Shown in pieces: positions 11,438 through 42,602 of a DNA stretch of 64,000 nt (positions within the stretch are counted from its first letter, which is position 1; each line of letters starts with the position of its first letter). A program made the position numbers and the translations under genes. Below the pieces are notes generated by a model that saw nothing but the letters and a program-made list of their open reading frames with translations, had not been told where the DNA came from and did not search any database. The stretch covers positions 124,001 through 188,000 of the IMG/VR virus record IMGVR_UViG_3300024259_000010, one strand, 5' to 3'.

Positions 11438-11446
11438 GGGAGTAAT

Positions 11447-12385
11447 ATGAATTATAAATATACGATTGATGAGAGGGTAAATTTCTATTTAGGTAATATG
11501 GATAAAAGATGTTACGATTACATGAAGGATATTACACCACGTGTACGTAATTATATATATACTGTATTGATAGGAAATAATATTGACAACACTGAAGTAT
11601 TAACTGGTGGTAAGGGTGCATTAGTTAATTCATTTAAATATATAGAAGGCACTCTTAATAAATTAATCAACGATGGTGTATGTCCTATAGATAAAACAAT
11701 ATTGGTATATTTAGCGGATCAAAATAGATTACGAACATTCCCAATGATTGCTAAAACACGTTTGATTGATGATAATGGTAATATTACCATAGCACCTATT
11801 GGTAGAGCTAGACACTATGGTCCCGTAGCAGACCTGCCTAATATTGATTGTAAAGTTAGTGATAAATGTAATAAAATTGTCTGGAGAGGACATTGTCAAC
11901 CTATGAATAATATTATTCATATTAGACAAGAAGTGGTTTCTAAATTTGCCGAACATAAAAACTCTAATATAGATATTGGATATTCTTCGGGTGTAGCAAC
12001 TGGATCTACATTATTAAAGAATAAGATGACATTACGTGAATTGTTGAGATATAGATTTAATATATCATTGGAAGGAAATGATGTTGCTACCAACCTTAAG
12101 TGGATTCTTGCTAGTAATTCAATAGCCGTAGCTCCTAGGATGACAACCGAGGGTTGGTTTATGGAAAGTAAGTTAGAACCTTGGGTACACTATATACCTT
12201 TAGATGACGACTGTATGGATATAGAGGACAAGTTAAATTGGGGGATATCTAATCCTGATAAATGTATTGATATTAATAAAAATGCTAATAAGTTTATGTT
12301 AGAGTTCGTGGACATAGAACGTGAGAATGAAATATTCTACAGAGTCCTGAAATCATATATTGAAAACATACATATAAATATTTAA
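11447..12385 (+). CDS. Glycosyltransferase family 90 (CAP10-like), paralog 2
   Basis: KIVWRG, LLRYRFNISLEGNDVATNLKWILASNS, EGWFMESKLEPWVHYIPL; clearly paralogous to the upstream gene. Confidence 0.85.
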   Translation: MNYKYTIDERVNFYLGNMDKRCYDYMKDITPRVRNYIYTVLIGNNIDNTEVLTGGKGALVNSFKYIEGTLNKLINDGVCPIDKTILVYLADQNRLRTFPMIAKTRLIDDNGNITIAPIGRARHYGPVADLPNIDCKVSDKCNKIVWRGHCQPMNNIIHIRQEVVSKFAEHKNSNIDIGYSSGVATGSTLLKNKMTLRELLRYRFNISLEGNDVATNLKWILASNSIAVAPRMTTEGWFMESKLEPWVHYIPLDDDCMDIEDKLNWGISNPDKCIDINKNANKFMLEFVDIERENEIFYRVLKSYIENIHINI

Positions 12386-12398
12386 AAGAAAGTAATCT

Positions 12399-13145
12399 AT
12401 GTTAGATTTTATAATAACCGGCCCATCTAGATCAGGTACAACAGGGTTAACCTACCTATTAAATTCTAGCTCTGAAGTACTATGTGGTCATGAAACTCAC
12501 GTGTTGGATTATTGGGACAAAGATATATCAGATCGTATAAGAAATAATATATTAGAGAAAATGTTTTATTCTGACCGTACACCAAGCATACTTGATTTTA
12601 CACCGAAAGGTGTAACCCCAGATATGTTAAAGACAATAGTTGAGACAAGTTCTACTGGTAAAGAATTATTTGATAGATTAAACAGTATTGCAAAATGTAA
12701 TTGTGTTGGTGATAAAGTACCTGGATATATTGTAACCCTTCCACAAATTCTTAAAAATAACCCACAACTTAAATTACTGATATGTATTCGTGATGGTCGA
12801 TCTATACTGGCATCACATTTACGTGGTTTAGAACCCGGATGGGCTACAGACAATATAAAAGATGCAGAAGAGCGAATAGTTATCTTTATGAATATCATTA
12901 ATAATATTGAGAATCATGATAAAGTTATATATGTTCCATATGAACACTATACACAACATACTGATTTTTTGATTAGAAGACTTGAGTCGTTTCTTGATAC
13001 CAAACTATCTAACTGTAATACTGATAAATATCGTGACTATACAGATTGGGATGACGTGTTCAAACAGCTACCGAAAGATTATATGGATAAAGTATCTCCA
13101 GAATTTATAGAATATCAAAAGAAATTTGGATATTCTTTAGTGTAA
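12399..13145 (+). CDS. PAPS-dependent sulfotransferase
   Basis: 5'-PSB loop FIITGPSRSGTT, GDKVP, 3'-PB motif IRDGRSILAS, YE motif. Confidence 0.8.
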   Translation: MLDFIITGPSRSGTTGLTYLLNSSSEVLCGHETHVLDYWDKDISDRIRNNILEKMFYSDRTPSILDFTPKGVTPDMLKTIVETSSTGKELFDRLNSIAKCNCVGDKVPGYIVTLPQILKNNPQLKLLICIRDGRSILASHLRGLEPGWATDNIKDAEERIVIFMNIINNIENHDKVIYVPYEHYTQHTDFLIRRLESFLDTKLSNCNTDKYRDYTDWDDVFKQLPKDYMDKVSPEFIEYQKKFGYSLV

Positions 13146-13342: not shown

Positions 13343-14188
13343 ATGAAAAATAAAAGTCTAGCATTCTCTGTTCAGACCATGCAAACTGTTCTCGGTAATG
13401 GACTAAAGTCTATTAAGCCAGACAAAGATGGTGTTTATAAAGGTGTACCATTAGCTGTAATTGGCAAACCATCTAGAAACAATGTTGTATACGATCAGAA
13501 TAGCTTTGTTGAATCTATCACTAATCCTAATACACGATTCTATAAGAGTTTAGTAGAAGGTGGTCTTGAAGGCGAGTGGGGTCATCCCATGAACATTGGT
13601 TTAAATAATAAAGATGCTATCATGCGTACCATGCAGATCGATGGTTCGAGAGTATCACATTACTTCACTAAAGTATATGCTAAGAAAACCAAAGATGGTG
13701 AGTACTACGTTGTATATGGTGACATTGTTCCTTTCGGACCTAATGGTCAGTACTTAGCTGCATCATTCCAAGACACTAAAAGAAATACTGCATTCTCTTT
13801 ACGCTCACTGACAACTGATCCTGAATCAATTGGTGGTGGTTTATGCCGTAAGAAGATCCTTGCATTAATTACTTTCGATGCTGTTAATACCCCTGGGTAT
13901 CAAGAAGCATGTAAATGCTTTATGGATACTGGCGAAGAATCATTTAAGTATGAACTTACTGAAGAGCAGATCGTATCTGCTGGTCTAGAAGACTTTGCTA
14001 CAGTTGAATGTGCTGAAGTTATTGGACAAGAAACTGTATCACATCAGTCTTTATTAGATTTACTAGAAACTGATAGCGTCACGCTTGCTACAAAAGAAAT
14101 CTCTGTTGTTGGAAACTTTGATAAGAAAACTGGTAGTATCCGTACTGGCACTTCTAATATCTCTGCGTTCCATGGTCTGTTCCGTTAA
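13343..14188 (+). CDS. Prohead (head maturation) protease, phiKZ gp175-like
   Basis: GEWGHP (His), AFSLRS (Ser), TFDAVNTPG (Asp); C-terminal G-x-E motifs (TGEE, AGLE, IGQE) consistent with autoprocessing. Confidence 0.85.
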   Translation: MKNKSLAFSVQTMQTVLGNGLKSIKPDKDGVYKGVPLAVIGKPSRNNVVYDQNSFVESITNPNTRFYKSLVEGGLEGEWGHPMNIGLNNKDAIMRTMQIDGSRVSHYFTKVYAKKTKDGEYYVVYGDIVPFGPNGQYLAASFQDTKRNTAFSLRSLTTDPESIGGGLCRKKILALITFDAVNTPGYQEACKCFMDTGEESFKYELTEEQIVSAGLEDFATVECAEVIGQETVSHQSLLDLLETDSVTLATKEISVVGNFDKKTGSIRTGTSNISAFHGLFR

Positions 14189-14208: not shown

Positions 14209-14784
14209 ATGTTTAATAAATTACGATTAATGAAAAGAAAGTCTGTGAATTATCCGACGATCTCTCATCATAAAGATGAAGATGGAAAGTCAACATGGAT
14301 AATTTCCATTCGTGGAATTATTGGAGGACAAGAATTATATACTGATGTATGTAATATCTTACTAACAGCATCTGAAGATGATACTGTTATCATTACTTTA
14401 AATACTCCAGGGGGAGTGGTCTTTACTGGGCTAGCAATTATTCATGCTATGCAGAAAAGTAGAGCAACCGTAGTAACGAGAGTTATCGGAATGGCTGCAT
14501 CATGTGGAGCGTTAATCTGGTCATATGGACAAAAGTTAGAAATGTGTCCATTCTCTAGATTAATGTTTCACGCATCTTCTGGGGGATTCATGGGTAAGAC
14601 CCGTGATCAGAGAGATTATGCTGAAGTCACCGAAACTCTTATGAAGAGTATAAATCAACGTGCTTTAACTAAGAACATCATTACTGCAAAACAGTTTGAA
14701 GATATGTTTGAAGCACGTCAAGATGTATACTTAAATTCTAAGGATTTAGAAAACAATAACGTGGAGTTCAACTATGCATCTTAA
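14209..14784 (+). CDS. clpP: ClpP-like serine protease
   Basis: LNTPGG, GMAASCG (catalytic Ser), LMFH (catalytic His), D-x-Y-L near the C-terminus. Confidence 0.8.
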   Translation: MFNKLRLMKRKSVNYPTISHHKDEDGKSTWIISIRGIIGGQELYTDVCNILLTASEDDTVIITLNTPGGVVFTGLAIIHAMQKSRATVVTRVIGMAASCGALIWSYGQKLEMCPFSRLMFHASSGGFMGKTRDQRDYAEVTETLMKSINQRALTKNIITAKQFEDMFEARQDVYLNSKDLENNNVEFNYAS

Positions 14785-15580
14785 TTTAAATAAATTGAAT
14801 TCTGAAGGTAAAGCTGATATAATTGAACCATCACAAGAAGATCTGTTCTCAATCGAAGCAAATAATTCTCATGAAGATGAGCCTAAGCTAGATGTTGAAA
14901 TGGGTTTATCTGGAAACCTAGTTACAGTTGAAACAATGGAAGAAGAAGAGATCGTAGTAACACCTGTGATCGGAGTAGAAAACTTAGAGGATGAAATTCC
15001 TTTAGTATCTGCACCTGGTCCACAAGGTCTACCTACAGAACCTAAAGAGAAAGAACCTAATACTGTTTATGTTCTGACTCCAACTAAAGTACATGCTTAT
15101 CTACATGGTAAGTGTTCTGAATCTGTAGATACATTAATTCACTTATTATCGCAAGCGACTGAAGATACTGAAGCATATATTTCATATTGTTATCCAATGA
15201 TTGATATCTATGATGCATTAGAATTAGTTGGTGTAATCGGAGCTACTAAAGCAAAAGTTACTTTAGATATTATTGGTGTATCGAGTGTTGTAGATTTATT
15301 ACTATTGACGAATGAAGACTGTACTATTAATCTAGCACAGAATCTTATCGTCACTGGTATTAAAGAAGTTAGCTTTGGCTCTCTTTATAATCTAGAAGAA
15401 TCTTTGATCGCAACTAAGAATTATCAGGAGCTAGTATATACCTCACTGAAAGAGAATGGAATCTTATCGGATGATGAGATAGATACTCTATCTGCAAAAG
15501 GTGGTATGTTATATCTCGATAAGACAATAGTTGATTCACGTTCTAAGAAAACAACACCTGTTGAAGAACTCTCTGAATAA
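14774..15580 (+). CDS. Degenerate ClpP-fold protein with acidic N-terminal extension
   Basis: The C-terminal ~170 aa align by eye to the upstream ClpP (DALELVGVIGATKAKVTLDIIGVSS vs TGLAIIHAMQKSRATVVTRVIGMAAS) but lack the PGG and His motifs; overlaps the clpP stop. Confidence 0.5.
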   Translation: MHLNLNKLNSEGKADIIEPSQEDLFSIEANNSHEDEPKLDVEMGLSGNLVTVETMEEEEIVVTPVIGVENLEDEIPLVSAPGPQGLPTEPKEKEPNTVYVLTPTKVHAYLHGKCSESVDTLIHLLSQATEDTEAYISYCYPMIDIYDALELVGVIGATKAKVTLDIIGVSSVVDLLLLTNEDCTINLAQNLIVTGIKEVSFGSLYNLEESLIATKNYQELVYTSLKENGILSDDEIDTLSAKGGMLYLDKTIVDSRSKKTTPVEELSE

Positions 15581-19118: not shown

Positions 19119-20054
19119 ATGAAAATTGGAATAGAAGAAGCTACTACTGATAGTGTGTCTTTAGATATTGCTTACAATGCTTTAGTAGAAGATGCTGAGG
19201 CAGGATTTGAAGGAATGTTTGTTCAAGAGTTGTTCAATGGTGAACCATTCTCACATGCATTCCTAGCAACATTGATCCGTTTAGAAACACGTTTAAATAG
19301 AAACATAAATCAGTATGCAGAGATAACTGATAAAGTTGAAAAGAAATTAATGGAAAGTAAGTCTATTCATTTATTACGGCATAAAGATACCATAGAATTG
19401 ATCGATGGACTTGAAGCTCTTCAGGATGTGATATTAGACATTACTGGTAAGGGTACTAACTTGTCACAGAAAGACATTGTTACTGCGTTGAAAAAGCTTG
19501 GTATCGATGGTGGTAAAAATCCATATGATAGAACTAATTGGACATTAGCTTCTAGTGGAGCTGCTGTACGACTAGGCGCTGTACTACTAGGCTTTGGTGT
19601 AACAAGTGGTAATCCATTTGTATTCGTTGCTGGTGCAGTTGCTATTGCTGCTGGTAAAACAAAAAGAAGTATCCGACAATATTCTATTCAGGATAGAGGT
19701 TGGGATTTAGATAAACTTACTGATGCCAATAAGCGTACACTTTCTCTTATTGAAAATCATAAGAAGGTTATAGCTAAAATTAAAACTGCTGCTCATACTA
19801 ATGTAAGTGACAATGTTGCTGAACAAAAGAAAGATGAGTTTAAAGCTGCTGGTATAATCATGAAAAAGGTTATCAAGTTCTACAAGAAAACAATTGCGGT
19901 TGTTGCACGTGGTCTTGGTAATGCTAATATTGATAAAATTGAATTCAAACGTGGTATGAAGGATAGTCTTCTTAATAGAGATTCAGATCTTGGTGAGAAG
20001 AAAGAAGAAACTTCAGACCTCTATGATGATGGTGACGGTGGTTCTGACTGGTAA
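19119..20054 (+). CDS. Putative internal head/ejection protein
   Basis: N-terminal IGIE and AGFE cleavage-type motifs; central hydrophobic/Gly-Ala hairpin (GAAVRLGAVLLGFG...FVFVAGAVAIAAG). Confidence 0.5.
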   Translation: MKIGIEEATTDSVSLDIAYNALVEDAEAGFEGMFVQELFNGEPFSHAFLATLIRLETRLNRNINQYAEITDKVEKKLMESKSIHLLRHKDTIELIDGLEALQDVILDITGKGTNLSQKDIVTALKKLGIDGGKNPYDRTNWTLASSGAAVRLGAVLLGFGVTSGNPFVFVAGAVAIAAGKTKRSIRQYSIQDRGWDLDKLTDANKRTLSLIENHKKVIAKIKTAAHTNVSDNVAEQKKDEFKAAGIIMKKVIKFYKKTIAVVARGLGNANIDKIEFKRGMKDSLLNRDSDLGEKKEETSDLYDDGDGGSDW

Positions 20055-20102
20055 AATAAAAGTAATAGCTAGTGCATTACGCACTAGCTATTACTTTATT
20101 AC

Positions 20103-20855
20103 TTATTTGTCTATATTAGAAAGTGCTTTACCTAATACACCAAATTGTTTTTTAAGATAGTTATGATTATTATGATTAACATTAGCAAACTTTTTATACT
20201 TACTACCACCTTTAGCTAACCACTCATGTGTCTTACTAGTATGTTCATCAACTTTAAACCATAGAAGCGCTAGAGCTTCAATTTTATTTTTGTTACACCA
20301 TCCAGATTTTTTAAGAGTAATTTCAGATCCCATACCTACCATGTTTCCAACTAACTCACCTTTTACGTTAGTATATTTTGATGTACTAAGTTGTAGATTT
20401 AACATAGAGTTCGGACCTTGCGTCAACCCAACTATTTCTTTTTCATTATTAGTACCCACAGCTTCGCCCAATAAACCTACTATATAACTCCAGCTATTGA
20501 CTTCTCTAAGTAAGAGCCTGATTTCTTTAACTGACATTATTTTAAGAGTGGATTTACCATATGTTCTAACAGTGTCTTCATTAGAATAACATAATTTATA
20601 TGCAGCTGGGTTACCAAGAATATCTTTAATATACTTATCCGCAATACTAGATGTAAATCCAATATTTTTTTTAATAAGACTTTGTAGGTCTTCTATTGAG
20701 GATAATATATTTTGGGAAGTAGTATCGACACCTACAGATCTAAGCTCTTCCCCAAAAAGTTGTTCTAGCTGTGGACTCCATCCGTGTGCTTCAATACATT
20801 CTTCAAGATCCATTAAATCCAATAGACTATCTATGATAGTATGTGTATTATTCAT
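20103..20855 (-). CDS. Putative internal head protein (propeptide shared with 23568..24590)
   Basis: CIEAHG.....LFG..L motif shared with 23568..24590; SIE site; late-type motif at 20886-20894. Confidence 0.5.
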   Translation of the reverse strand: MNNTHTIIDSLLDLMDLEECIEAHGWSPQLEQLFGEELRSVGVDTTSQNILSSIEDLQSLIKKNIGFTSSIADKYIKDILGNPAAYKLCYSNEDTVRTYGKSTLKIMSVKEIRLLLREVNSWSYIVGLLGEAVGTNNEKEIVGLTQGPNSMLNLQLSTSKYTNVKGELVGNMVGMGSEITLKKSGWCNKNKIEALALLWFKVDEHTSKTHEWLAKGGSKYKKFANVNHNNHNYLKKQFGVLGKALSNIDK

Positions 20856-20938
20856 TGATCCCCTTTCATTAAATTATTTACATTTCATAGAATGATTAAA
20901 TATTAACGTATTTACCACATACTATACGGGAGATTTAT

Positions 20939-23509
20939 ATGTATATAAACAACATTGAATTGAGTATGTTTAAACCTATGATGCACGCTGGTAATAATTT
21001 TATATCTATAGATAAACTAGATATGATTACAGTGTTGGTAGGTTGCAATGGTAGTGGTAAAACTACATTGTTGAAAGAGCTTACACCCCTTCCCTCTATA
21101 TCAACTGATTATGAACTTAGTGGTTATAAACGATTAGAGATAGAACATAATGGATCTAACTATACAGTTGAATCTAGGTTTGATGGGAAGACGGGTAAAC
21201 ATAGTTTTATAAAAGACACAGAAGAATTAAATATATCTAAGAAAGCAAATGTACAACAAGATCTCTGTGAACAAGAATTGGGATTAACACCAATCATTAG
21301 ATCTATCATTACAGGATCTATCGATATATGTAATATGGGTAGAGCTGAACGCAAAGCGTTATTATTATCATGCTATCCATCTAACATGGCTTTCGTATTA
21401 CAACATTATAAGAAGATTGTTTCTGAAATGAAAACAATTAAAGATAATCTTAAGATGCTAACAGCACGAAAAGCTGAATTGGAAAGTACAAGAATATCTG
21501 AAGAGATGTACAAAGCGTTGTCATCTGATATGGAGTTCTTAGTCAAGTATCGTGAGATGGTTAACAATAAGATATTATTGATAACAGATGATATAGATCG
21601 GATGAAACAACTTCCAGAATATAATCCATCTATAGAGCCAATTGAATGTGATACTGTTCAACAACTTACTAGAGATCTTTTTAATAGAGGTGTCTCATAT
21701 AGAATACAGCATCCTGAGTTATTTAAGAAGAGTCATCAGAGTAGTGTAGCAGAGTTATCAACTACACGAGATTTCTTAAAAGATAATTCAACTAAGATCG
21801 AAGAAGATATTCAAGCTCTACATTTAGATATTGAGAAGTTCACTCGTATGAACGAGGAAGCATCTGAAGAGAAGCTTAATGATTATATTGTTCTGGCTGA
21901 GAGTTATCAAAAACAGATTAATGATATAGTTGTGGATAAACATGTTCCAGTATTAGATATGTATGTTATTAATAAACTCAATGCAGATTTAATAACACAG
22001 CATATTCAAAACATTTACACATGCTCAACTAATTCAAATGGTCATATTGATGTTGAGTTATCTAATTCATCACATAGTGATATAACAGAAAGATATTATA
22101 ACCTACAGAGAGAGATTGAAATGCTCAAGCATGATAGCTCTCAATTACTAACATCTTTAAAAAGGGCTCAGGAGAGAATTACCAAAGCTGAGAAATATTC
22201 ATTTGCTCAGGGGTGTAATTTACCATGTCAGGCTAGAGAGAAGTATTCTGAAACTATAAATAGTCTTAAGCAAGAAGAAGGTGGTCTTGTTAAAACACTA
22301 GGTAAGTTAAAAGAAGATATAGACACTAAAGAAGTACTACTGGGTGATTATGCAATTACGCTAGAAGAGTTTAAATCTATCCTTCCTTCTATAACTTATA
22401 TAGAAACTGTATTAAGGGATATTGATAGTAACTCTTATATTCTAGGTAAATCAACGTTAGCAAAAGTTTTACAGAAAAACCCCTTGTCTATAAGCAATTG
22501 TATTACTAAGCTTATTGAAAATAGCTTAGATCAGTACAAGTGTATTGAACTAGAAGATAACCTTAAAACTTTATCAGAAAAGATAACTACTTTACAAGAG
22601 ATTAGAGAGAAGACTCTGAACGTTATTGGTGACTCAATTAATGTTAAGCAAACTAAGTTAGATGAACTACTTGCTAAACATGCAACTGATGAAACTAAGA
22701 TTAATTCTATCAGTGGTCTATTGGAATTATATGAAGATATTAAAGGCATGGATGATAGTGTTAATGATATCAAAGAAATATATGAGACCAAGATCATAGC
22801 TAATATAATTAATGCTAAGATAGTATTATTAGAATCTTGCAAAAGAGACTTATTAGTATATGATAATATTATTGAAGATGAACAGCTTTCTATCAAGTCT
22901 ACTATCAAAGACAAAGAGTCTATTAAAATTAGATTGGAAGAAGAGATCGTTCCTAATATAAAAAGACTAACTGAAGAATTAAGCAAGTTGTCTTTATTAG
23001 AAAAAGCATTATCTCCAACTAAAGGTATCCCACATCTATATATGATTCGGTTCATAAACAACATACTTGTGTATACTAATAAGTTAGTAGCTAGTGTATG
23101 GAATTATGAAATGGAATTTGAACCTCTTAAAGAAGATAAAGAATTAACATTTGATTTTGAGATCAAACTTTATGAAAAGAGTAAACTAAAAGATATCAGT
23201 TGGTTGTCTAAAGGTCAGAAAGAAATGACTAACTTAGCGTTCATTATATCTCTGTACATGATTATGAATCTAGGAAAGACATATCCTTTGAAACTAGATG
23301 AGATCGATAGTGGGTTCTCACATCAACATAGAGACAAGCTTGTTAATCTAATTGCTGAGTTAATCTTTAAGAAAGATATCGAACAGATGTTTATGGTGAA
23401 TCATCATGCGTCTATTTATACTGGTATTAAGGAAGCTCGAATTGTATGCCTCAATCCAGATGGTATTATTCTTCCAGTTGATTACAATAAAGACGTAATA
23501 TTAAAATAA
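20939..23509 (+). CDS. sbcC: SbcC/Rad50-like SMC ATPase
   Basis: Walker A GCNGSGKT, long coiled coil with CNLPC zinc hook, signature LSKGQ, Walker B LKLDEID, H-loop. Confidence 0.9.
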   Translation: MYINNIELSMFKPMMHAGNNFISIDKLDMITVLVGCNGSGKTTLLKELTPLPSISTDYELSGYKRLEIEHNGSNYTVESRFDGKTGKHSFIKDTEELNISKKANVQQDLCEQELGLTPIIRSIITGSIDICNMGRAERKALLLSCYPSNMAFVLQHYKKIVSEMKTIKDNLKMLTARKAELESTRISEEMYKALSSDMEFLVKYREMVNNKILLITDDIDRMKQLPEYNPSIEPIECDTVQQLTRDLFNRGVSYRIQHPELFKKSHQSSVAELSTTRDFLKDNSTKIEEDIQALHLDIEKFTRMNEEASEEKLNDYIVLAESYQKQINDIVVDKHVPVLDMYVINKLNADLITQHIQNIYTCSTNSNGHIDVELSNSSHSDITERYYNLQREIEMLKHDSSQLLTSLKRAQERITKAEKYSFAQGCNLPCQAREKYSETINSLKQEEGGLVKTLGKLKEDIDTKEVLLGDYAITLEEFKSILPSITYIETVLRDIDSNSYILGKSTLAKVLQKNPLSISNCITKLIENSLDQYKCIELEDNLKTLSEKITTLQEIREKTLNVIGDSINVKQTKLDELLAKHATDETKINSISGLLELYEDIKGMDDSVNDIKEIYETKIIANIINAKIVLLESCKRDLLVYDNIIEDEQLSIKSTIKDKESIKIRLEEEIVPNIKRLTEELSKLSLLEKALSPTKGIPHLYMIRFINNILVYTNKLVASVWNYEMEFEPLKEDKELTFDFEIKLYEKSKLKDISWLSKGQKEMTNLAFIISLYMIMNLGKTYPLKLDEIDSGFSHQHRDKLVNLIAELIFKKDIEQMFMVNHHASIYTGIKEARIVCLNPDGIILPVDYNKDVILK

Positions 23510-23567
23510 TATATATATATAGTACTACACCATTATGGTGTAGTACTATATTATTTATTTATTCTTG

Positions 23568-24590
23568 TTATTCAGTATCAACTTTAATTGCATCGATTAT
23601 TAAAGTATATGCATTTAACATTCTACTTGCAACTGTGGTCTTTAAAGTCAAATATGTGGATATATATTTAATCACCCTAACTAATTCTCTACCTTCAGAT
23701 TCCGACTCGGAAAGGATTTTAAAAACTTTATCATTACTTAACTTATCCAATTCTTTTTGGTTATCAAGCATATTTTCGATAAATGCTATTGTCTTTTCTA
23801 TTTCAGTTTTTAATTTTAATATATCTGATTTATCTTTAATATATCTAATCCATGAAAATTGTTTATCAGATTGAATATTAGAGTTATTATAATACTCTGT
23901 CGAACTTGATTTTAGATCACGATCTTCTAGAATAGCATTCACATTACTATCATTAACATCAAACTTCCCATTTGTAATATCCTTAAATACGCTCATGATG
24001 CTTTTACTCATAACATATACACTTGTATTATCATTTTCTATTAGATTATTACCTGGAATTGGTATTTTTAAATCACTAATATCATCGACATCTAATTTAT
24101 ATTTTGCATCACTATCTAATTTAATAAGTAGTTTCATCATATCTTCATTAGAAGGTTTACCAAATTTCTTATTAAATTTATTCTGTATTAATTGTTTCTT
24201 TATTTTCATCCAATTAAAAATTTTCTTGAAAAAATTTTTAATTGCTTCAATTACCCTTTTAATAGCTTCCCATATCTTTTTAACAAAATCAGTTACAGCG
24301 CCTTCAAGTGCAATACATACTGCTTTACCATCTCTAGCTTCAAACCCATTAACATCTGTTAATTGGTCTCCGAACAATGAGATGATACTATTATCAATAC
24401 CATGTGCTTCAATAGAACATTTGATATCTTTAATATTTGTATGACTTTCAGTCATATAATCCAGATCTTTCACAGCATCTTCCAGTGCAATGTAAGATTC
24501 TAACATATCAACTTCTCTTGAAAAAACAACAGACATCGGTATAGTTTTTTCACTAAGGGGTTCTATAATTGCATCTAATCCAATATTCAT
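23568..24590 (-). CDS. phiKZ-like internal head protein
   Basis: Acidic propeptide with ALE/SIE/ALE sites, followed by the amphipathic helix DFVKKIWEAIKRVIEAIKNFFKKIFNW typical of jumbo-phage inner head proteins. Confidence 0.7.
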   Translation of the reverse strand: MNIGLDAIIEPLSEKTIPMSVVFSREVDMLESYIALEDAVKDLDYMTESHTNIKDIKCSIEAHGIDNSIISLFGDQLTDVNGFEARDGKAVCIALEGAVTDFVKKIWEAIKRVIEAIKNFFKKIFNWMKIKKQLIQNKFNKKFGKPSNEDMMKLLIKLDSDAKYKLDVDDISDLKIPIPGNNLIENDNTSVYVMSKSIMSVFKDITNGKFDVNDSNVNAILEDRDLKSSSTEYYNNSNIQSDKQFSWIRYIKDKSDILKLKTEIEKTIAFIENMLDNQKELDKLSNDKVFKILSESESEGRELVRVIKYISTYLTLKTTVASRMLNAYTLIIDAIKVDTE

Positions 24591-24680
24591 ACTATATTCC
24601 TTTTTTTATAAATTATTCTAATTGCATATAATGATTACATATATATATATTGTACTATAAATAAAATATTAGTAATTGTA

Positions 24681-25004
24681 TTACTTTATTATACTAGCTA
24701 TTTTAGATTCAATTTCTTTAGCAGGTTTCTGCTTAGACCAAGCATCTAATAATTCAATACGTAAACCATTTACAGTAGATGTAGTCATATTCACTTCTTT
24801 ATCAGATACTTCTGAATTAGAAATAATATCTGACATAATACCTAATGCCTCGGTACAATGTTTGATAGTAGTCAATACTTTTTCGATATCAACTTTTGTA
24901 GACACCTTCTTTAGTATCCATGTGAGTGTAATAGCTAATAATGTCTCAACTGGAATTTTCTTAAAGGTCATTCCTATTAATTTTAGTATTCTTACTTTCC
25001 ACAT
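24681..25004 (-). CDS. Hypothetical protein, possibly membrane-associated
   Basis: 107 aa with hydrophobic segment LLAITLTWIL; AAGGA RBS. Confidence 0.45.
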   Translation of the reverse strand: MWKVRILKLIGMTFKKIPVETLLAITLTWILKKVSTKVDIEKVLTTIKHCTEALGIMSDIISNSEVSDKEVNMTTSTVNGLRIELLDAWSKQKPAKEIESKIASIIK

Positions 25005-25186
25005 AATTTATCCTTTTCTTTATTTTTTAAGTTATTATAAAGTATGCCACAAGCATACGTTTCTTTATTAATAAGTTTAATTTTATTTAATGATGATTTG
25101 ACTTTACCATAAGTTTCATTGGGATACCGTTCCATTCTATCGGGTTTAATTATTGGAAACTTCCCACTAACATTACTTTTCTTCAT
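24992..25186 (-). CDS. Hypothetical basic protein
   Basis: 64 aa ORF overlapping both neighbours in the operon. Confidence 0.35.
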   Translation of the reverse strand: MKKSNVSGKFPIIKPDRMERYPNETYGKVKSSLNKIKLINKETYACGILYNNLKNKEKDKLCGK

Positions 25187-25544
25187 TCTTAGCTTCTTTT
25201 TCCATTTTAGCTAAGCGTGTATAATAATCGGGAAATTCAGTAAGGTGATCCAATGCTATCTTCTCAGCAATAAGAGGATTAGTAGTGTGTTCCATTTCTA
25301 CTTCTATTCCCATCTTAACTTGAGTTTTATTATGCCCGCCATAATCTTTACCCTTGGATTTACCTTCATTGAGAAAGGAGCACAATACTTCTTTAACAAT
25401 TACATTAAAAGTTTTAACATCAATACTTATAGTATCTACAAATTTCTTAATAGCGTCATCTTTAGGATATGGATTTTCCATGATCCATTTAATAACTTTA
25501 TCCTTCTTATCACTATTGTTTAATATCTCTAAACCAATTTTCAT
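25173..25544 (-). CDS. DUF5661-like protein
   Basis: MGIEVEMEHT...AEKIALDHLTEFPDYYTRLAKME motif; begins MKIGLE. Confidence 0.75.
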   Translation of the reverse strand: MKIGLEILNNSDKKDKVIKWIMENPYPKDDAIKKFVDTISIDVKTFNVIVKEVLCSFLNEGKSKGKDYGGHNKTQVKMGIEVEMEHTTNPLIAEKIALDHLTEFPDYYTRLAKMEKEAKNEEK

Positions 25545-25830
25545 AATCCCCCCTATAGTTGGTCACGTAATGATGTAAATAAAAATAGAAGACATCATTA
25601 ATGCTAGTATATTATGATCATTGCATGTACAGTGGGTATAGTCAAATGAGTTATAGGCATATATTACATTCATGTAAACGTTTACATTAAAGGGATTATT
25701 AAAAAAATTCCCTTTATTATCGTATGAATATATACGACGATCAATAACTTATAAACTAGATTTAAATAGCTACAATATAAACACATCGTCATATTTAGTA
25801 CTAATTAGTTAACTAGAAGGAAATGTACAA

Positions 25831-26244
25831 ATGAGTAAGAATAAACCCCTAGAGTGGTTGGGACAAGAACCAGTAGAAGCAAAAGACGGTCTTTTCAAAG
25901 TATCTAATAGTGGATTGAATGCTGCTAAAGATGCAGCAGGTTTGACCAAAGATGTTCGTAAAGCAATTACGGATTTTGAAGATTCATCTGATGGATCAGC
26001 TATCGCATTTTGTGGTGACCAGGTTATGAAGACTGGCAATCAGTGTACTCTTGAAGTTGGAACTGGTAACAGCAAAATTGTTTACACCATGGGTGCTAAA
26101 GGCGAAGCTCGTAATCCTAAGACTGGCGAAGTCTCTGATACATATGCACGCTTCGGAAAACGCAAACGTGGAGTTGTATCCAAAACATTGCGTGATGGTG
26201 ATCTAGCTGCTATGCAAGCTAAAATTGAAAAAGCATTAAGCTAA
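25831..26244 (+). CDS. Early protein with HU/IHF-like arm motif
   Basis: GEARNPKTGE motif; TATATTAC upstream; own terminator downstream. Confidence 0.45.
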   Translation: MSKNKPLEWLGQEPVEAKDGLFKVSNSGLNAAKDAAGLTKDVRKAITDFEDSSDGSAIAFCGDQVMKTGNQCTLEVGTGNSKIVYTMGAKGEARNPKTGEVSDTYARFGKRKRGVVSKTLRDGDLAAMQAKIEKALS

Positions 26245-26268
26245 TTCAATTACAGTATTTTATATTAG

Positions 26269-26307
26269 TAATAGTCTATGGGTAACACCATAGGCTATTA
26301 TTTTTTT
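26269..26307 (+). terminator. Intrinsic terminator
   Basis: TAATAGTCTATGG/CCATAGGCTATTA stem followed by a T run. Confidence 0.7.
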
Positions 26308-26467
26308 GTTTAAAATGTAAGTTTTTACAATGTTGTAAAAATGAAACCCCTTGTTAGGAAGGGTTTTTAAATTATTATTTAAAAAATACCATAATTATAA
26401 TATACAAATTCCACAAAACTCCACTCCGTATTCGATTTTAGTATTATAAAAGAAACGGATTATTAAA

Positions 26468-27097
26468 ATGGTTAAGAAGCAATATAGAATTTTATGTATT
26501 GACCCAGCGCTTTCAAGTTGCGGATGGTCGATCTTAGATCTGATGATCGATCAATGTAAAAAAACTTCTATACCTAAGATAGTGGTATATAGAACTAGCT
26601 GTTTCAAATCTTATAATGAAGCTATTAAAGCTGCTAATAGAGTTGAAGCTAATTTCTTTGGCAAACCAGTGTTAGGTCTGAGTATATTGATTAAGAATAT
26701 GACTCAGTTAATAGAATTGTATAAACCAGATTTTGTTGTTATTGAAGATGCGTTCTTCAATCCTAAACGACCTAATGCATATGCGTCGTTAATTTCATGC
26801 ATCGTCACAATATCACAAATGTGTCGTAACTTATTTAAGCTTCCTGTATATAGAGTTCCTACTCGTTCAGCTAAAGCATCTATTGCAATGGGTGGTGCTA
26901 AGAAAGTTGATGTTCAGAAAGCAGTATTAGAAAACCCTAACATTACCTTCAAGCAAAAGAAAAGTAGAGAGATGCTTAATGACCATGAGGCTGATAGTAT
27001 CGCAGTCGGTCATTTCTTCATAACTAGTCTACTACCTGGTATCGTACCAGAGGATTACTTCGGAACAATAGAAGCTTTGAAAGGGGCCGTGAAATGA
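26468..27097 (+). CDS. ruvC: RuvC-like Holliday junction resolvase
   Basis: ILCIDPALSSCGW, VVIED, AK..I..GGAKKVDV, DHEADSIAVG. Confidence 0.9.
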   Translation: MVKKQYRILCIDPALSSCGWSILDLMIDQCKKTSIPKIVVYRTSCFKSYNEAIKAANRVEANFFGKPVLGLSILIKNMTQLIELYKPDFVVIEDAFFNPKRPNAYASLISCIVTISQMCRNLFKLPVYRVPTRSAKASIAMGGAKKVDVQKAVLENPNITFKQKKSREMLNDHEADSIAVGHFFITSLLPGIVPEDYFGTIEALKGAVK

Positions 27098-27294
27098 AGA
27101 ATGAAATACAATGCGATTGTTGCAAACGTCCTGTGACAAAACTAACCCCCAGATACGTAGCTATTAAGAAAAAGATTTTAAATATTTGTGATACATGCAT
27201 TGCACATTATGTTACCTATGATCCAGCTGACTGGATTGAGGATGGTGACGCAACTATTATGTGTACTGGTGTAATTAAAACTGAAGATGAATAA
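27094..27294 (+). CDS. Small zinc-finger protein
   Basis: CDCC...ICDTC; ATGA-type overlap with ruvC. Confidence 0.5.
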   Translation: MKNEIQCDCCKRPVTKLTPRYVAIKKKILNICDTCIAHYVTYDPADWIEDGDATIMCTGVIKTEDE

Positions 27295-27365
27295 TTTTAA
27301 TATGTACTAAATAGGTTGGGCAACTGACCTATTTAGTGTTTATATTTTTTAAAAGGAATTTATAA

Positions 27366-28142
27366 ATGAAGTTAAGAATAGATAAACTATTTGGTAAAAA
27401 TATTAAATATATGGATTTCCCAAAAAGTGAATTAGAATCATATAGAAAAAGATTAAGCAAAGGGTTGCCTACATATACAACAAGAATATCTGCTGAACAA
27501 GGTAAATATATTGCTAATGAGATAGTTAACTCACCATTTGGCCGAATTAAAATAAATCAAGTCACTAGCTATAAGGCTGGTTCTAAACATCCATTTGAAA
27601 AAGAGTTGAGTCCAGGACAACTGGCTTCTATAAAAGGACCATTTGATATTATTAGATTCTCTCTTGTAAATGTATTTATTAAACATGGGCCTGCTAAATG
27701 GCTTAAGCTTGCACAGTTTAATTTTGACTCCACTGTTTGGAAGATTAAAGATCAACATAAATTAGATCTTAAAAAAGTAATATTGGTTATTTCAGATGTA
27801 CCTGTTGATAAAGATGGTAAGAAGTCATATGATCATATAAATGACTCACTTGGATCAGCTGCTAGTAAAGCAGTCCCACCATTTATAGTTATTCCATCTG
27901 AAGCTAAATTCATTAAGGTGATGAAACATTGGAATATACCAAAAGAAGATAAAGATGATATGCTCCAACATATAATCACACATGAGTTAATACATTTTGT
28001 AGTTGATACATATTCAGATGATAGAATCAAACGTGAAGTTAAAGCGCTTGGTAATTTTGGAACAGTATATTCAAAAGCAGTTAAGAAAGATACTGAGACA
28101 CTTGTTGAGTATCTATCACTTAAATTAATTGGAAAGATTTAA
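27366..28142 (+). CDS. Hypothetical protein with HEXXH metallopeptidase-like motif
   Basis: IITHELIH followed by a downstream ETLVE. Confidence 0.5.
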   Translation: MKLRIDKLFGKNIKYMDFPKSELESYRKRLSKGLPTYTTRISAEQGKYIANEIVNSPFGRIKINQVTSYKAGSKHPFEKELSPGQLASIKGPFDIIRFSLVNVFIKHGPAKWLKLAQFNFDSTVWKIKDQHKLDLKKVILVISDVPVDKDGKKSYDHINDSLGSAASKAVPPFIVIPSEAKFIKVMKHWNIPKEDKDDMLQHIITHELIHFVVDTYSDDRIKREVKALGNFGTVYSKAVKKDTETLVEYLSLKLIGKI

Positions 28143-28143
28143 A

Positions 28144-29082
28144 ATGAATAATATAGGAATGGAAGCATTAGATGAATATGATCCAAGCAAAGAATGGATT
28201 GGTGTTGATCTAGATAGAACACTTGCTCATTATGAGAAGTGGGTAGATATTTATACTATTGGGGAACCTATCCCTAAGATGGTAAGACGAATCAAACATT
28301 GGATACGTGAAGGTAAGACTGTAAAGATCTTTACTGCACGTGCTAGTCAAGAACCTATTGAAGATATTTCAAAAGCTATTGGAGATTGGACTGAGAAGCA
28401 TATGGGTACTCGACTTGAAGTCACATGTCGTAAAGATATGTACATGACTCAACTCTGGGATGACATTGCAGTTAGAGTAGAAGTGAATACTGGGGAAATT
28501 GATAATTCATTTAAAGAAGAGGATTCCTCTGAAAAGCCTAGTAAATCATATAGTTTCATTGGCGAGAATGTTTTCATTATAGATGTTGAGTCCATTGGTA
28601 TTCACGGTGAACCTTTCTCAGTTGCAGGGGGTATTTATAATATCAAAACAAATAAAGAAATTGAATCATTTGTATTTGGTATTCCTAGAAATATTGCTAA
28701 TGGTTTACCTAGTGATAGAAAATGGGTTGATGAAAATATTCCAGAGTTTGACTACACTAAGTCTTTTGAATCAGTAGATGAAATGTGTCAAGCATTTATG
28801 GAGAAGTGGATAGCTATCAAGAAGCAATACGATGGTATTAATATGTTCGCTGAATGCCCATGGCCAGTAGAAGGTAGATTTTTAAATACTTGTGTTAAAA
28901 CAGATATTTCAAAATATATATTTGAAGGACCATATCCATTATACGATATAACATCTATGATGGCTATAGCTGGATTAGATCCTATGGCTACCTACAAAAG
29001 AATTGAATCAGAAAAACCTGCACACAATCCTTTATCTGATATTAGATTATCATTTAGATTATTATGTCACTCTGTGAAATAA
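28144..29082 (+). CDS. HAD-family phosphatase fused to DEDDh 3'-5' exonuclease-like domain
   Basis: WIGVDLDRTL, IFTAR, K, WDD (HAD); IIDVES...E...HNPLSD (DnaQ-like). Start moved to ATG 28144 (MNNIGME). Confidence 0.7.
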   Translation: MNNIGMEALDEYDPSKEWIGVDLDRTLAHYEKWVDIYTIGEPIPKMVRRIKHWIREGKTVKIFTARASQEPIEDISKAIGDWTEKHMGTRLEVTCRKDMYMTQLWDDIAVRVEVNTGEIDNSFKEEDSSEKPSKSYSFIGENVFIIDVESIGIHGEPFSVAGGIYNIKTNKEIESFVFGIPRNIANGLPSDRKWVDENIPEFDYTKSFESVDEMCQAFMEKWIAIKKQYDGINMFAECPWPVEGRFLNTCVKTDISKYIFEGPYPLYDITSMMAIAGLDPMATYKRIESEKPAHNPLSDIRLSFRLLCHSVK

Positions 29083-34838: not shown

Positions 34839-35075
34839 TTTTAACATAAAAATGAATGGTATACAATACTTTATGTGTATCATTATATGCAATATAAAGA
34901 TAAAAAAATTGCATCGATGAAAATTGATGGATGTTTGCAACAGTTTATAGCTAGATCGTGTAATTAACGTGTGTGTGTTGGTGTGTGTGCTCTAGCATTG
35001 AACTTAGTAAATAAAAATTTATTTAATCACTTGCAATTAATAGTTTATATGAATAAATATAAAAAGGATAATATT

Positions 35076-37211
35076 ATGGATATTAACGCATTATTACAAA
35101 ACATCGAAGATGAATGCCGCGAAGGTAAAGTCGGTGGTGATGTTCTTACTACAGCTCGCGTTGTAAGTAAGTCTGTTACTGACTTCCTCTCTACAAATGC
35201 TGTAGGGTCTTCTTCCGAAGATTTCGTCGGACAAACTTTTAACATGAATAAAGCTTTCGGACAAGAGGAACTTGAATCCCTCGGTTCTAGCTCTATTATC
35301 GCACTCGTTGAAGAAGCTGGTGTTCCTACTCATTATAAAGCCGAAGCTGCAGCTACTGTTGCTAACCTGCTTTTCCGTGCTGCTGGTTCTTCTAGTGATT
35401 TCAATGCTGTTGTAAGCTCACAGACCAAACGTGCTGATAACGCCGGTTCGTCTGTTATTGGTATTGAACAGTTCATGCCTGAAGCAGTAAGTAACTTCTA
35501 CGTTGGCCAAGAGGCTTTCGGTGCTACTTCTGACCGTGTAATTTCTGACCTCCAGGTTGCTATTACCGTTAGCTTGCTCAAATGGCATAACACGATTACG
35601 CCTCGCGTACTCTCTAACATCCCTACAACCCAGCCTACGGTTAACTACATCCGTGAAGAACTGACTGTTTACCAACTCGAATCCGATGTTGAAAACGACC
35701 AGTCCCTGATCGACCTGTATGAAAACCCTGCTCTTGTTAGCAATGAACTGACCCGTATCATTCCTTTAGATAAGAATGATGAAGTCGGTGGTGCTGGTGG
35801 AGTCGGTGGAGCTGTTGTTTCAGATGGTATCCTCAATTTCGGCGTCGAAGCACGTCTATTGGAATTAGGTATCAAAGCTGATGTCTATGGATATAATAAA
35901 TATAATCGTACTGATATCGTTGCTGACGGTGTTAAGCTTGACACGATTCATATCAATATTACATCTGATGGTGGAACCACTGAATCGTTCGCTATTTCTA
36001 TCCCTGACAGTCGTTCACGTTTGACTCGTTCTAATAATCAGCTCAGTACTATCCGTACTGCACATATTGATTATACAACGACTCTTAACGTTAAATCTAC
36101 TGCTGACGGTGTTACAACTCCTTCTACTGAGTTGTTAGCGATTCTCGCTGCTACTGGTGATAGCCTGGTTATCAAACTTGAAGCTACTCCACGTATTGAT
36201 ATCCGTGACGGTATGGCTCATTGCTTAGGTGCATTATCTGTATCTGCTGTTTCTGATAACGGTGGCGATGCTGATAGCGCAACTACTGCTGCTCTTACTG
36301 CTTCTGATATCGAACTTAAGGGTTATTCCTTAGACGCTCGTTATGCAGAAGAAAATATGCGCAAGTCGAATATCGCTACTACTACTGAGCGTGCTCAGCT
36401 GGTATACGAAATTCCACAAGGCCGTAACTACCTCTTGGACGTTCCACTGAACGGACCACAGGTTGATCGTTCGCAGAACACTGCTAACCTTTACAATGTA
36501 TGTCGTATTGGTCAAGACAATGTAGTTCTGAAAACTATCTTGGCTGTGCTTGCTGATGTTGGTGTTGCTACTGAAGCATATGACTTAGATCCTACGCGTG
36601 AAAATCGCCCAGGTGCTATGTTCGCTGCAGGTGGACGTGTACGTCCTACGTATATCGCTGATACTCTTAACATGACTGGAATCGATTCGTTCGATGACGC
36701 TCGTCGTCAAGAAGCTATTCAGGGTCGCGTTCTAACGTACCTCAACTCTGTTGTTCAGCAGATCATGGCTACTTCGTTCTTCAGCCAACAGCTTGATGGC
36801 AATAGTGCTCCGACTTTCCGTCTGATCACTGGTCCTCAGATTCTTGGTAACATTGTTGGTGCTAAGCCAGGTGAATTCCAGGTTGAAAACGCTAATGGTG
36901 TTGAACTGACATTGAAGATGACCTCTGGCGTTGTGCTTGAGTGTGTTACTTCTACGTTTGACTTCATGCAAGATAAGATCGTTATCGTGCCGTTCCTCTC
37001 CGGAGATCCTGCATCTGATCTTAACTTTGGACATAACCGTGACTTCGGTACTGTTGTTGGTAGTTATACCCACAATGAAAACGGTGCTGCTGTACAGCGT
37101 CTGCTTGCTAATATCCGTGAGCTTCCTGTTCCTACCAATGTTATTGGTGCGATCTTGGATGTTGAAGGTATTGACATCGCTACGTTCCGTGCTGACATTG
37201 TCACGCCGTAA
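35076..37211 (+). CDS. Major capsid protein (phiKZ gp120-like)
   Basis: 711 aa from ATG 35076 (AAGGA RBS); G-x-E propeptide sites (FGQE, IGIE, VGQE); GYSLDARYAEENMR and LNFGH motifs; strongly biased high-expression codons; strong terminator; synteny with dnaB. Confidence 0.85.
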   Translation: MDINALLQNIEDECREGKVGGDVLTTARVVSKSVTDFLSTNAVGSSSEDFVGQTFNMNKAFGQEELESLGSSSIIALVEEAGVPTHYKAEAAATVANLLFRAAGSSSDFNAVVSSQTKRADNAGSSVIGIEQFMPEAVSNFYVGQEAFGATSDRVISDLQVAITVSLLKWHNTITPRVLSNIPTTQPTVNYIREELTVYQLESDVENDQSLIDLYENPALVSNELTRIIPLDKNDEVGGAGGVGGAVVSDGILNFGVEARLLELGIKADVYGYNKYNRTDIVADGVKLDTIHINITSDGGTTESFAISIPDSRSRLTRSNNQLSTIRTAHIDYTTTLNVKSTADGVTTPSTELLAILAATGDSLVIKLEATPRIDIRDGMAHCLGALSVSAVSDNGGDADSATTAALTASDIELKGYSLDARYAEENMRKSNIATTTERAQLVYEIPQGRNYLLDVPLNGPQVDRSQNTANLYNVCRIGQDNVVLKTILAVLADVGVATEAYDLDPTRENRPGAMFAAGGRVRPTYIADTLNMTGIDSFDDARRQEAIQGRVLTYLNSVVQQIMATSFFSQQLDGNSAPTFRLITGPQILGNIVGAKPGEFQVENANGVELTLKMTSGVVLECVTSTFDFMQDKIVIVPFLSGDPASDLNFGHNRDFGTVVGSYTHNENGAAVQRLLANIRELPVPTNVIGAILDVEGIDIATFRADIVTP

Positions 37212-41893: not shown

Positions 41894-42087
41894 TGTTATC
41901 ATATTCAAAATACACAATTGGTCGTGAGTTACGATTCACATGGGTGCCAACTAAATTAGAATCAGGTAGTATAGTGTGGGGTACTTGGGTAGAGCGAAGT
42001 GTAGTATATATGCGAGTACATCTACTTAAGTTTATAAAGTTTACTATAACTTTAAAATATATTTATAATATTAGAAATGGGGCTTAA
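41893..42087 (+). CDS. Hypothetical protein
   Basis: 64 aa; TAATG-coupled on both sides. Confidence 0.45.
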   Translation: MLSYSKYTIGRELRFTWVPTKLESGSIVWGTWVERSVVYMRVHLLKFIKFTITLKYIYNIRNGA

Positions 42088-42602
42088 TGGAAATTGGAAT
42101 AGGAGATCTTAAAGAAGGCGAGTACGATAGTACCGAAGATACAAAAAAACATATCGCTAATGTAGCAGGTAAAATCATGCGAATGATTGATGCTCTTACC
42201 AATCGTGCTAAAGTACATGACAAGAGTAAATTGGAGTCTCCTGAGAAAGAAGACTTCGATAAGTTTACCCCACGTCTTGCAGGTATGGATTATGGTGGAG
42301 ATGAATATAAACAGTGTTTGAAAGATATGGAACCTACCATAGCTCATCACCATGCTAATAATAGACATCATCCTGAGTTCCATGAAAATGGAATCGCTGA
42401 TATGAATCTTATTGATGTCTTTGAGATGTTTGCTGACTGGTGCGCTGCTACTGAACGCCATGATACTGGGAACATCTTTAAGTCTATTGAGCTTAACCAG
42501 AAACGCTTTGGTTATAGTGATGAATTAGCCGCTATTATGGTTAACACAGCTAAGTCTATGAAAATGGGTAAAGGTGCTGATGAGAAACCTGAAGTGGATT
42601 AA
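42087..42602 (+). CDS. DUF5662-like HD-type protein
   Basis: HDKSKLE, HH..NNRHHPE, MNLIDVFEMFADW. Confidence 0.75.
   Translation: MEIGIGDLKEGEYDSTEDTKKHIANVAGKIMRMIDALTNRAKVHDKSKLESPEKEDFDKFTPRLAGMDYGGDEYKQCLKDMEPTIAHHHANNRHHPEFHENGIADMNLIDVFEMFADWCAATERHDTGNIFKSIELNQKRFGYSDELAAIMVNTAKSMKMGKGADEKPEVD

Follow-up and report, generated by a model that had tools for sequence, protein, structure and literature searches.

Four genes in the 64,000-nucleotide stretch of virus DNA analyzed here (hereafter, the window; part of IMG/VR contig IMGVR_UViG_3300024259_000010, Ga0233437_1000081, 235,833 bp) open with almost the same six or seven codons. We refer to the short N-terminal element that these codons specify as the tag. 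Its carriers in the window are an ORFan (the 19119 protein), an inner head protein (IP) of the phiKZ_IP family, a DUF5661 protein, and a HAD phosphatase fused to a DEDDh exonuclease (the HAD-exonuclease; Table 1). A six-frame scan of the window found M-x(1,2)-I-G-[ILMVF]-[ED] at the starts of these four open reading frames alone, and all four genes have an ATG start with a purine-rich ribosome-binding site 6 to 12 nt upstream. The initial annotation of this DNA had described near-identical starts on four proteins with unrelated bodies. The starts were found where it had placed them, on real ATGs with ribosome-binding sites, and the four bodies showed no pairwise or profile similarity to one another. 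Its labels for the inner head protein (24590, minus strand), the DUF5661 protein (25544, minus strand), and the HAD-exonuclease (28144, plus strand) were likewise upheld. Six proteins of this genome were seen to share the tag, three of which are not IP paralogues. Five of the six have the small residue-x-Glu form, as G-x-E; the exception is the window IP, with G-L-D.

The window phage is an uncultured, distant phiKZ-like jumbo phage (33% GC) that is also present as a 236,983-bp ENA contig. The phiKZ-like markers of its genome include an S80/gp175-type prohead protease, a phiKZ-type capsid protein, a phiKZ vertex protein, a sheath protein, a large terminase (TerL), the phrog_2921 head protein, and split RNA polymerase subunits. 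Counts given below for the window refer to 55 proteins; genome-wide counts cover ∼127 of 237 kb and 109 proteins, with ∼63 kb of that outside the window. No close relatives were found among cultured phages or other IMG/VR contigs. Megablast gave no match between the window phage and cultured phages, tblastn of cultured phages with the 19119 protein or an IP paralogue gave none, and a capsid-protein search for cultured relatives, run at too strict an E-value, found none. In IMG/VR, queries with the 19119 protein, a 416-residue head protein, the vertex protein, RuvC, and a RuvC alignment each returned the source contig only. A DNA scan of IMG/VR for ATGAAAATTGGNNTNGA gave, among the matches listed, scattered and apparently chance occurrences, and the source contig was not among them.

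We quantified how far the shared start exceeds chance. IG[ILMV][ED] occurs 10 times in the window proteins, 4 of these at the tagged starts. Amino acid composition predicts 0.02 matching starts in 55 proteins (4 observed). When the test was corrected for the look-elsewhere effect (any reduced-alphabet 4-mer, rarity-weighted, with a column-shuffle null that keeps position-specific composition), 12 of 3000 nulls were as extreme; a cruder statistic, the largest shared 4-mer, was not significant on its own (4 to 17% of nulls reach 4). In the cleanest test, the motif was defined from external IP homologues and then applied to the 94 non-IP proteins of the phage. Three matched; of 20,000 column shuffles, 4 gave three or more matches, and none of 20,000 samples drawn from internal windows did so. 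All three non-IP tags retain the Glu, and the family consensus at position 8 (Leu/Ile) is also matched by the DUF5661 protein and the HAD-exonuclease. The enrichment over shuffled N-termini that the initial annotation had anticipated was seen among these proteins. At the protein level, the tag is a signal that chance does not account for.

Table 1. Tagged starts and other features of the window discussed in the text
Feature	Coordinates	Strand	Description
Tag codons MKIGIE	19119..19136	+	Start of 311-aa ORFan gene 19119-20054 (MKIGIEE)
Tag codons MNIGLD	24573..24590	-	Start of 340-aa phiKZ_IP-family protein 23568-24590 (MNIGLDA)
Tag codons MKIGLE	25527..25544	-	Start of 123-aa DUF5661 protein 25173-25544 (MKIGLEI)
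Tag codons MNNIGME	28144..28164	+	Start of 312-aa HAD phosphatase-DEDDh exonuclease fusion 28144-29082 (MNNIGMEA)
Peptidase_S80 (phiKZ gp175-type) prohead protease	13343..14188	+	phrog_3014 at 2e-34; PF20034 on contig copy
Acidic 268-aa protein	14774..15580	+	VIGVE69 (nt 14966-14980); downstream of two protease genes; no family match
250-aa protein	20103..20855	-	IP-family block IEAHG..L..LFGEEL (hhalign probability 88%, E=3e-6); no tag
phiKZ-type major capsid protein	35049..37211	+	PF25620, E=1.4e-18

To place the tag in its family, we examined the window IP and its homologues. The protein matches PF12699 (phiKZ_IP) only weakly (24.2 bits; cutoff, 27), but a paralogue with a PF12699 annotation matches it at E = 1e-20; 21 of the 29 members of its family match PF12699. 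A HMMER search with the window IP against 1.8 billion representatives returned 35 homologues of ∼300 to 350 residues. In an alignment of 20 metagenomic homologues, the family start is M-[KND]-[LIV]-G-[LIF]-x-x-L (consensus, MxLGxExL), and Gly4 is the sole invariant column (20/20). Two further tagged IP paralogues adjoin one another outside the window: the best homologue of the window IP, beginning MKLGLES (L130:10001-10954), and a second beginning MKIGIEQ (L130:11225-12121). The second, of 298 residues, matches the family profile at a probability of 86%. The window IP, the two paralogues outside the window, and most of the 35 homologues belong to PF12699, whereas the 19119, DUF5661, and HAD-exonuclease proteins do not. 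Within PF12699, the M-K-[LI]-G-[LI]-E start is a trait of the metagenomic subgroup; the phiKZ and SPN3US members quoted in the literature begin differently. The wider family is also not uniformly tagged, since the 250-residue protein at 20103-20855 has the family block without the tag. Codons for the tag vary between phages (ATT/CTA/CTT, GGA/GGT, and ATA/TTT/TTG), indicating that conservation is at the protein level. Given the family-wide conservation of the start and the further paralogues in this genome, the tag is, as judged from the alignments, the ancestral N-terminus of one phiKZ_IP-like subfamily and is not unique to the window. The IPs begin with a propeptide of ∼97 residues, which has the tag at its head and a conserved [AST]-x-E site at its end. 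In the window IP, this site is IALE97↓G (the arrow marks the predicted cut), a probable maturation site within the conserved block of the family.

The enzyme presumed to read the tag is the S80 prohead protease of the window. Prohead proteases of the phiKZ type follow the cleavage rule S/A/G-x-E (PMC5694885). More distant members of the IP family, which begin MKIISLE or MKIVSIE, have Ser for Gly at P3 and thereby stay inside this rule. Candidate self-cleavage sites in the C-terminal tail of the protease are AGLE216 and VIGQE230 (nt 14018-14032), predicted to shed a tail of 65 or 51 residues, and two related proteases have G-x-E or A-x-E sites in their tails. The N-terminal region of the major capsid protein contains VIGIE140↓Q (nt 35454-35468), VGQE155, and FGQE73, the protein starting at 31496 on the minus strand contains VGFE29, and the acidic protein that starts at 14774, with its internal VIGVE site, may be a scaffold-like protease substrate. 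The secondary sites quoted in the initial annotation (capsid protein, protease, 14774, and 31496) were all present.

These sites are not scattered evenly through the proteome. IG.E occurs 14 times in the 109 proteins, about the expected total; however, 7 of the 14 lie within the first 30 residues versus 1.2 expected (P = 6e-5). VIG.E occurs 5 times versus 0.8 expected, always at propeptide-like positions of head- or virion-type proteins (capsid protein E140, protease tail E230, 14774 protein E69, head-tail joining protein E28, and RNA polymerase beta-like subunit E25). The site of the 534-residue head-tail joining protein (PF24214; L127:11970-13574) reads KVIGVE28↓KA and is a candidate end of a short propeptide. 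That of the RNA polymerase beta-like subunit, encoded outside the window in the same genome (L170:4730-6811), reads PEVIGLE↓NL and is conserved as PEIIGME↓AL in the corresponding subunit of a distant 230-kb phage (L167:15582-17657, minus strand), in which the six residues IGMEAL are identical to the start of the HAD-exonuclease. The site suggests that the subunit is processed and packaged in the virion with a propeptide of ∼25 residues. From these positions, we infer cleavage after [V]-I-G-x-E by the protease of this phage; the tag would be such a site at the extreme N-terminus. The earlier proposal that the tag is a cleavage address therefore stands in part: the tag has the form of the likely S80 protease site that recurs in head proteins, but it is not the cut that matures the IPs, since a tag at the head of a ∼97-residue propeptide with further downstream sites would not be what frees the mature protein. 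We also observed a candidate short propeptide (LLGIE21↓SS) in an 867-residue protein encoded to the left of the window (L129:3741-6344).

Directly after the S80 gene comes another protease gene, this one of ClpP/S49 type (14209-14784, plus strand; phrog_1827 at 8e-34, with head-maturation-protease PHROGs also matched), which overlaps the start of the gene for the acidic 268-residue protein. Two unrelated protease families adjoining in a phiKZ-like head module are unusual.

Among the carriers that are not IP paralogues, the DUF5661 protein (E = 1.3e-16) is encoded by the first gene of a minus-strand unit whose last gene is that of the IP. Its homologues (55 to 60% identical) begin MDKLTQxILxEQE or bear longer extensions. 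The N-terminal segment is positionally homologous among them, with Gly and Glu peculiar to this phage. Among the homologues from other phages (P0052-P0170), some have a ∼40-residue extension ending EILLEDE, and the hydrophobic-x-Glu endings of these starts recall T4-type sites. Elsewhere, DUF5661 is embedded in a DUF2213 head-module protein (Vibrio phage VPs20, Chaseviridae), adjoins or is fused with the large terminase in Kyanoviridae, and lies among replication genes on a 120-kb contig; the evidence for DUF5661 as a general head protein is thus mixed.

The N-terminal half of the HAD-exonuclease is a capless HAD phosphatase with a DxDxT motif, whose nearest folds include the T4 and mammalian polynucleotide 3'-phosphatases. 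The C-terminal half has a DEDDh exonuclease fold (predicted local distance difference test score, 95; RNase T, E = 6e-7). Both halves occur elsewhere as separate proteins of ∼175 residues on many metagenomic contigs, and the fusion is probably an enzyme for healing and trimming nucleic acid 3' ends. HAD homologues begin a few residues before WIGVDLDGTLA, whereas the phage protein has the additional residues MNNIGMEALDEYDPSKE, placing its tag in a flexible 17-residue extension before the first strand of the fold; residues 1 to 10 are unstructured in the AlphaFold2 model. In these two carriers, the tag lies outside the conserved HAD and DUF5661 folds, and their homologues lack it (in the HAD alignments and in all 119 DUF5661 homologues listed). 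The notion of a free tag grafted onto proteins does not hold, however, since the tag is the ancestral start of the IP family and has IP paralogues as at least three of its carriers.

A relative on a 7.7-kb contig (L131; RuvC 62% identical), whose IP begins MKIGLEN, keeps the neighboring genes but lacks the DUF5661 and HAD-exonuclease genes at the syntenic places, indicating that both are lineage-specific additions. DNA around the ribosome-binding sites of the two genes is not homologous to IP gene starts. Simple capture of the 5' end of an IP gene by the DUF5661 gene was considered and found unsupported, the relative sharing the intergenic core but not the region of the ribosome-binding site and start. 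For an element of six codons, such capture is nevertheless conceivable. The shared core (∼25651-25730) consists of a hairpin (AAAGGGAATTTTTTTAATAATCCCTTT) followed by TAATATATG and is probably a bidirectional terminator plus promoter between divergent units.

The third such carrier, the 19119 protein, matched itself only among 5.8 billion proteins, and a search of a protein atlas gave leads at chance level only. When it was aligned to the IP profile, residues 1 to 12 alone aligned (probability, 1.5%); descent as a hidden IP paralogue is thus unsupported beyond the tag. The protein may still be a very diverged IP paralogue, given its IP-like length, its IP-like ribosome-binding site and start, and its place in a late-type unit. 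Its gene is the last in a unit composed of TerL, a head protein, and 19119, with a late-promoter-like motif upstream of 17867. Residues ∼143 to 180 form a Gly/Ala-rich hydrophobic stretch (LASSGAAVRLGAVLLGFGVTSGNPFVFVAGAVAIAAG) and the tail is acidic, a sequence character with which the protein might be a membrane-active ejection protein.

Two promoter-like motifs were observed in the window. The motif aTCATTnTATG, which we take to resemble the TATG late promoters of phiKZ, precedes head and virion genes (upstream of 9781, 13343, 17867, and 52113 and, on the minus strand, of 20103, 24590, and 30573). ATATATATTAC precedes other genes (upstream of 29204, 37627, 40001, and 62093) and may mark early genes. 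An imperfect late-type copy precedes the DUF5661 gene, and no such motif was seen upstream of the HAD-exonuclease unit. Two near matches to the tag were left uncounted: a DUF5662 protein (42087..42602, plus strand) that begins MEIGIGD, with its Pfam domain starting at residue 12, and a 64-residue protein encoded by the adjoining gene (41893-42087, plus strand), with IGRE at residues 9 to 12. Between the virion genes and the protease gene (10463-13145, plus strand) lie two Glyco_transf_90 paralogues and a sulfotransferase (Pfam, on the contig copy), a possible sign that components of the virion or of the host surface are glycosylated or sulfated.

The closest known parallel to the tag is the capsid-targeting sequence (CTS) of T4, which is carried by the internal proteins IPI-III and Alt (Mullaney and Black 1996, cited in PMC5694885). 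Like the CTS, the tag is a short N-terminal peptide common to several proteins, and its G-x-E ending (G-L-D in the window IP) may be the site of the prohead protease. The T4 element ends hydrophobic-x-Glu, can be moved onto foreign proteins, and is carried by one injected enzyme (Alt). The two differ in that the CTS spans 10 to 20 residues and ends L/I-x-E, whereas the tag spans 6 to 7 residues and has Gly at P3; the window phage encodes a phiKZ S80-type protease, unlike T4; and targeting and removal, known by experiment for the CTS, are predictions for the tag.

Closer in protease family are the substrates of phiKZ, 201phi2-1, and SPN3US. In phiKZ, the capsid protein is cut at E163↓N164, the IP paralogues gp93 and gp162 are cut near their N-termini at SLE-13 and E17, respectively, and residues 14 to 84 of gp93 have a capsid-binding function (PMC11297242). 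The SPN3US protease gp245 removes its own 64-residue C-terminal tail and prefers Val at P4 (PMC10052503). The beta subunit of the 201phi2-1 virion RNA polymerase is processed, and SPN3US gp53 and gp54 have an identical 15-residue start that was likened by the authors to the T4 CTS (PMC5694885). The candidate sites described here share with these substrates the protease family, a small residue at P3, and Glu at P1; P4 is Ile here versus Val in SPN3US, both hydrophobic. The lengths of the capsid-protein propeptide and of the C-terminal protease tail are also similar to those in phiKZ and SPN3US. The known N-terminal cuts in the phiKZ group fall at residues 12 to 24 or 111 to 275, whereas the candidate cut here is at residue 6, and the shared starts reported for that group link paralogues, whereas here they link unrelated folds. 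In the cited literature, no HAD, exonuclease, or DUF5661 protein is reported as a substrate of a phiKZ-type protease. The phiKZ group is thus already known for IP paralogues that share their starts and for short N-termini that are cleaved off; a six-residue version across unrelated folds is new.

Taken together, we read the tag as an N-terminal protease-site signal like the T4 CTS, ancestral to the IPs and extended in this lineage to accessory proteins, a reading to which we give roughly even chances. The tag would have the form of an S80 protease site, with Ile at P4, Gly at P3, and Glu at P1. Most likely, the protease would dock on the exposed N-terminus in the prohead and clip after the Glu, and it would likewise act on V-I-G-x-E in its own tail and in three further proteins (capsid protein, head-tail joining protein, and RNA polymerase beta-like subunit). 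The 19119, DUF5661, and HAD-exonuclease proteins would, on the most likely reading, enter proheads as protease substrates in the manner of T4 CTS carriers. Cutting of the V-I-G-x-E sites, cutting of the tag, and head entry driven by the tag and not by other parts of the protein are all predictions. The cargo-loading, injected-effector model put forward initially is plausible as a hypothesis. The strongest form of that model appears doubtful to us, namely, that six residues would suffice to load the head and that this lineage would have turned an acquired PNKP-like 3'-phosphatase-DEDDh exonuclease and a DUF5661 protein into packaged and injected cargo.

Several observations weigh against the tag as a head address. 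The acidic residue at P1 (Glu or Asp two residues past the Gly) is present in 13 of the 21 Gly-carrying family members, and the window IP has Asp there, indicating that cleavage is not the sole conserved function; S80-type prohead proteases are not known to cut after Asp. Short propeptides known in the phiKZ group measure 13 to 24 residues, not 6. By analogy with gp93 of phiKZ, the capsid-binding part of the IPs may lie in the ∼97-residue propeptide, which the three non-IP carriers lack. The HAD-exonuclease gene lies in a RuvC/zinc-finger repair unit with no late-promoter-like motif. The further ∼63 kb of this genome yielded no additional non-IP tag, and four loci from other phages whose IPs are tagged (L131, L167, L176, and L177) had the tag on no protein other than IPs. 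In 33 TerL-anchored metagenome loci, no tagged gene was found near TerL; at ∼30% identity, these loci are too distant to test conservation of orthologues.

On a rival explanation, the tag functions in the IP family only and is, on the 19119, DUF5661, and HAD-exonuclease proteins, either left over from recombination with the 5' end of an IP gene or a coincidence helped by AT-rich codon bias at gene starts. We consider this explanation rather unlikely. It accords with the confinement of the tag to IPs in related loci, with the IP-typical length and late-type unit of 19119 and its ribosome-binding site and start (TTAAGGAAATGTAATATGAAAATTGGA), which resemble those of IP genes, and with K, N, and I being the commonest residues at positions 2 to 3 of the phage's proteins; the crude 4-mer statistic is also unremarkable. 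However, three matches among the 94 non-IP proteins to a motif derived externally were reached in very few composition-keeping shuffles, the agreement of two carriers extends to position 8, and the Glu is kept on all three non-IP tags. The DNA upstream of the DUF5661 and HAD-exonuclease starts is not homologous to that upstream of IP genes.

Two other explanations place the function of the shared start elsewhere than in the prohead. The sequence could act on the mRNA, with AUGAAAAUUGGA... at the start codon serving as an initiation context or as the site of a translational regulator, as in the RegA operators of T4. The nucleotide strings within this phage are indeed very alike (ATGAAAATTGGAATAGAA, ATGAATATTGGATTAGAT, and ATGAAAATTGGTTTAGAG), and four to six short examples are too few to separate the codon level from the residue level. 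Nevertheless, homologues from phages of 43 to 49% GC encode the same residues with other codons (ATGAAACTAGGATTTGAG and ATGAAACTTGGTTTTGAG), the HAD-exonuclease copy is offset by one codon and uses ATA and ATG, only a generic ribosome-binding site is conserved upstream of the ATG, and the tag residues recur internally at propeptide positions; we regard an mRNA-level role as very improbable. Scarcely more probable is that the tag addresses its carriers to another partner or destination, for example the ClpP/S49-like protease, as a degron, or a sorting step specific to nucleus-forming jumbo phages. The stronger conservation of Gly4 relative to Glu suggests binding over cutting, the second protease gene adjoins the S80 gene, and DNA is what the HAD-exonuclease and its operon partners (RuvC) act upon. 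Against such an address, the IPs are head proteins, the V-I-G-x-E sites that recur in head proteins have the same motif as the tag, and no ATPase partner of the ClpP-like protein was seen. We also know of no linear import signal for phage nuclei.

For the selection of the dozens of internal and ejected head proteins of phiKZ-like phages, a propeptide role like that of the T4 CTS has been suggested (PMC5694885, PMC10052503). A short N-terminal element with an invariant Gly and a match to the protease site, which is also present on unrelated enzymes, is a concrete and mutable candidate for a packaging signal, and it could allow the cargo of uncultured jumbo phages to be predicted from sequence. 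As a mere relic of the family, the tag would still be a useful signature of one IP subfamily. Packaging of the enzyme carriers, if real, would make them new injected effectors that act as infection begins, and if six residues suffice, the tag would be a minimal, portable cargo code for jumbo-phage heads.

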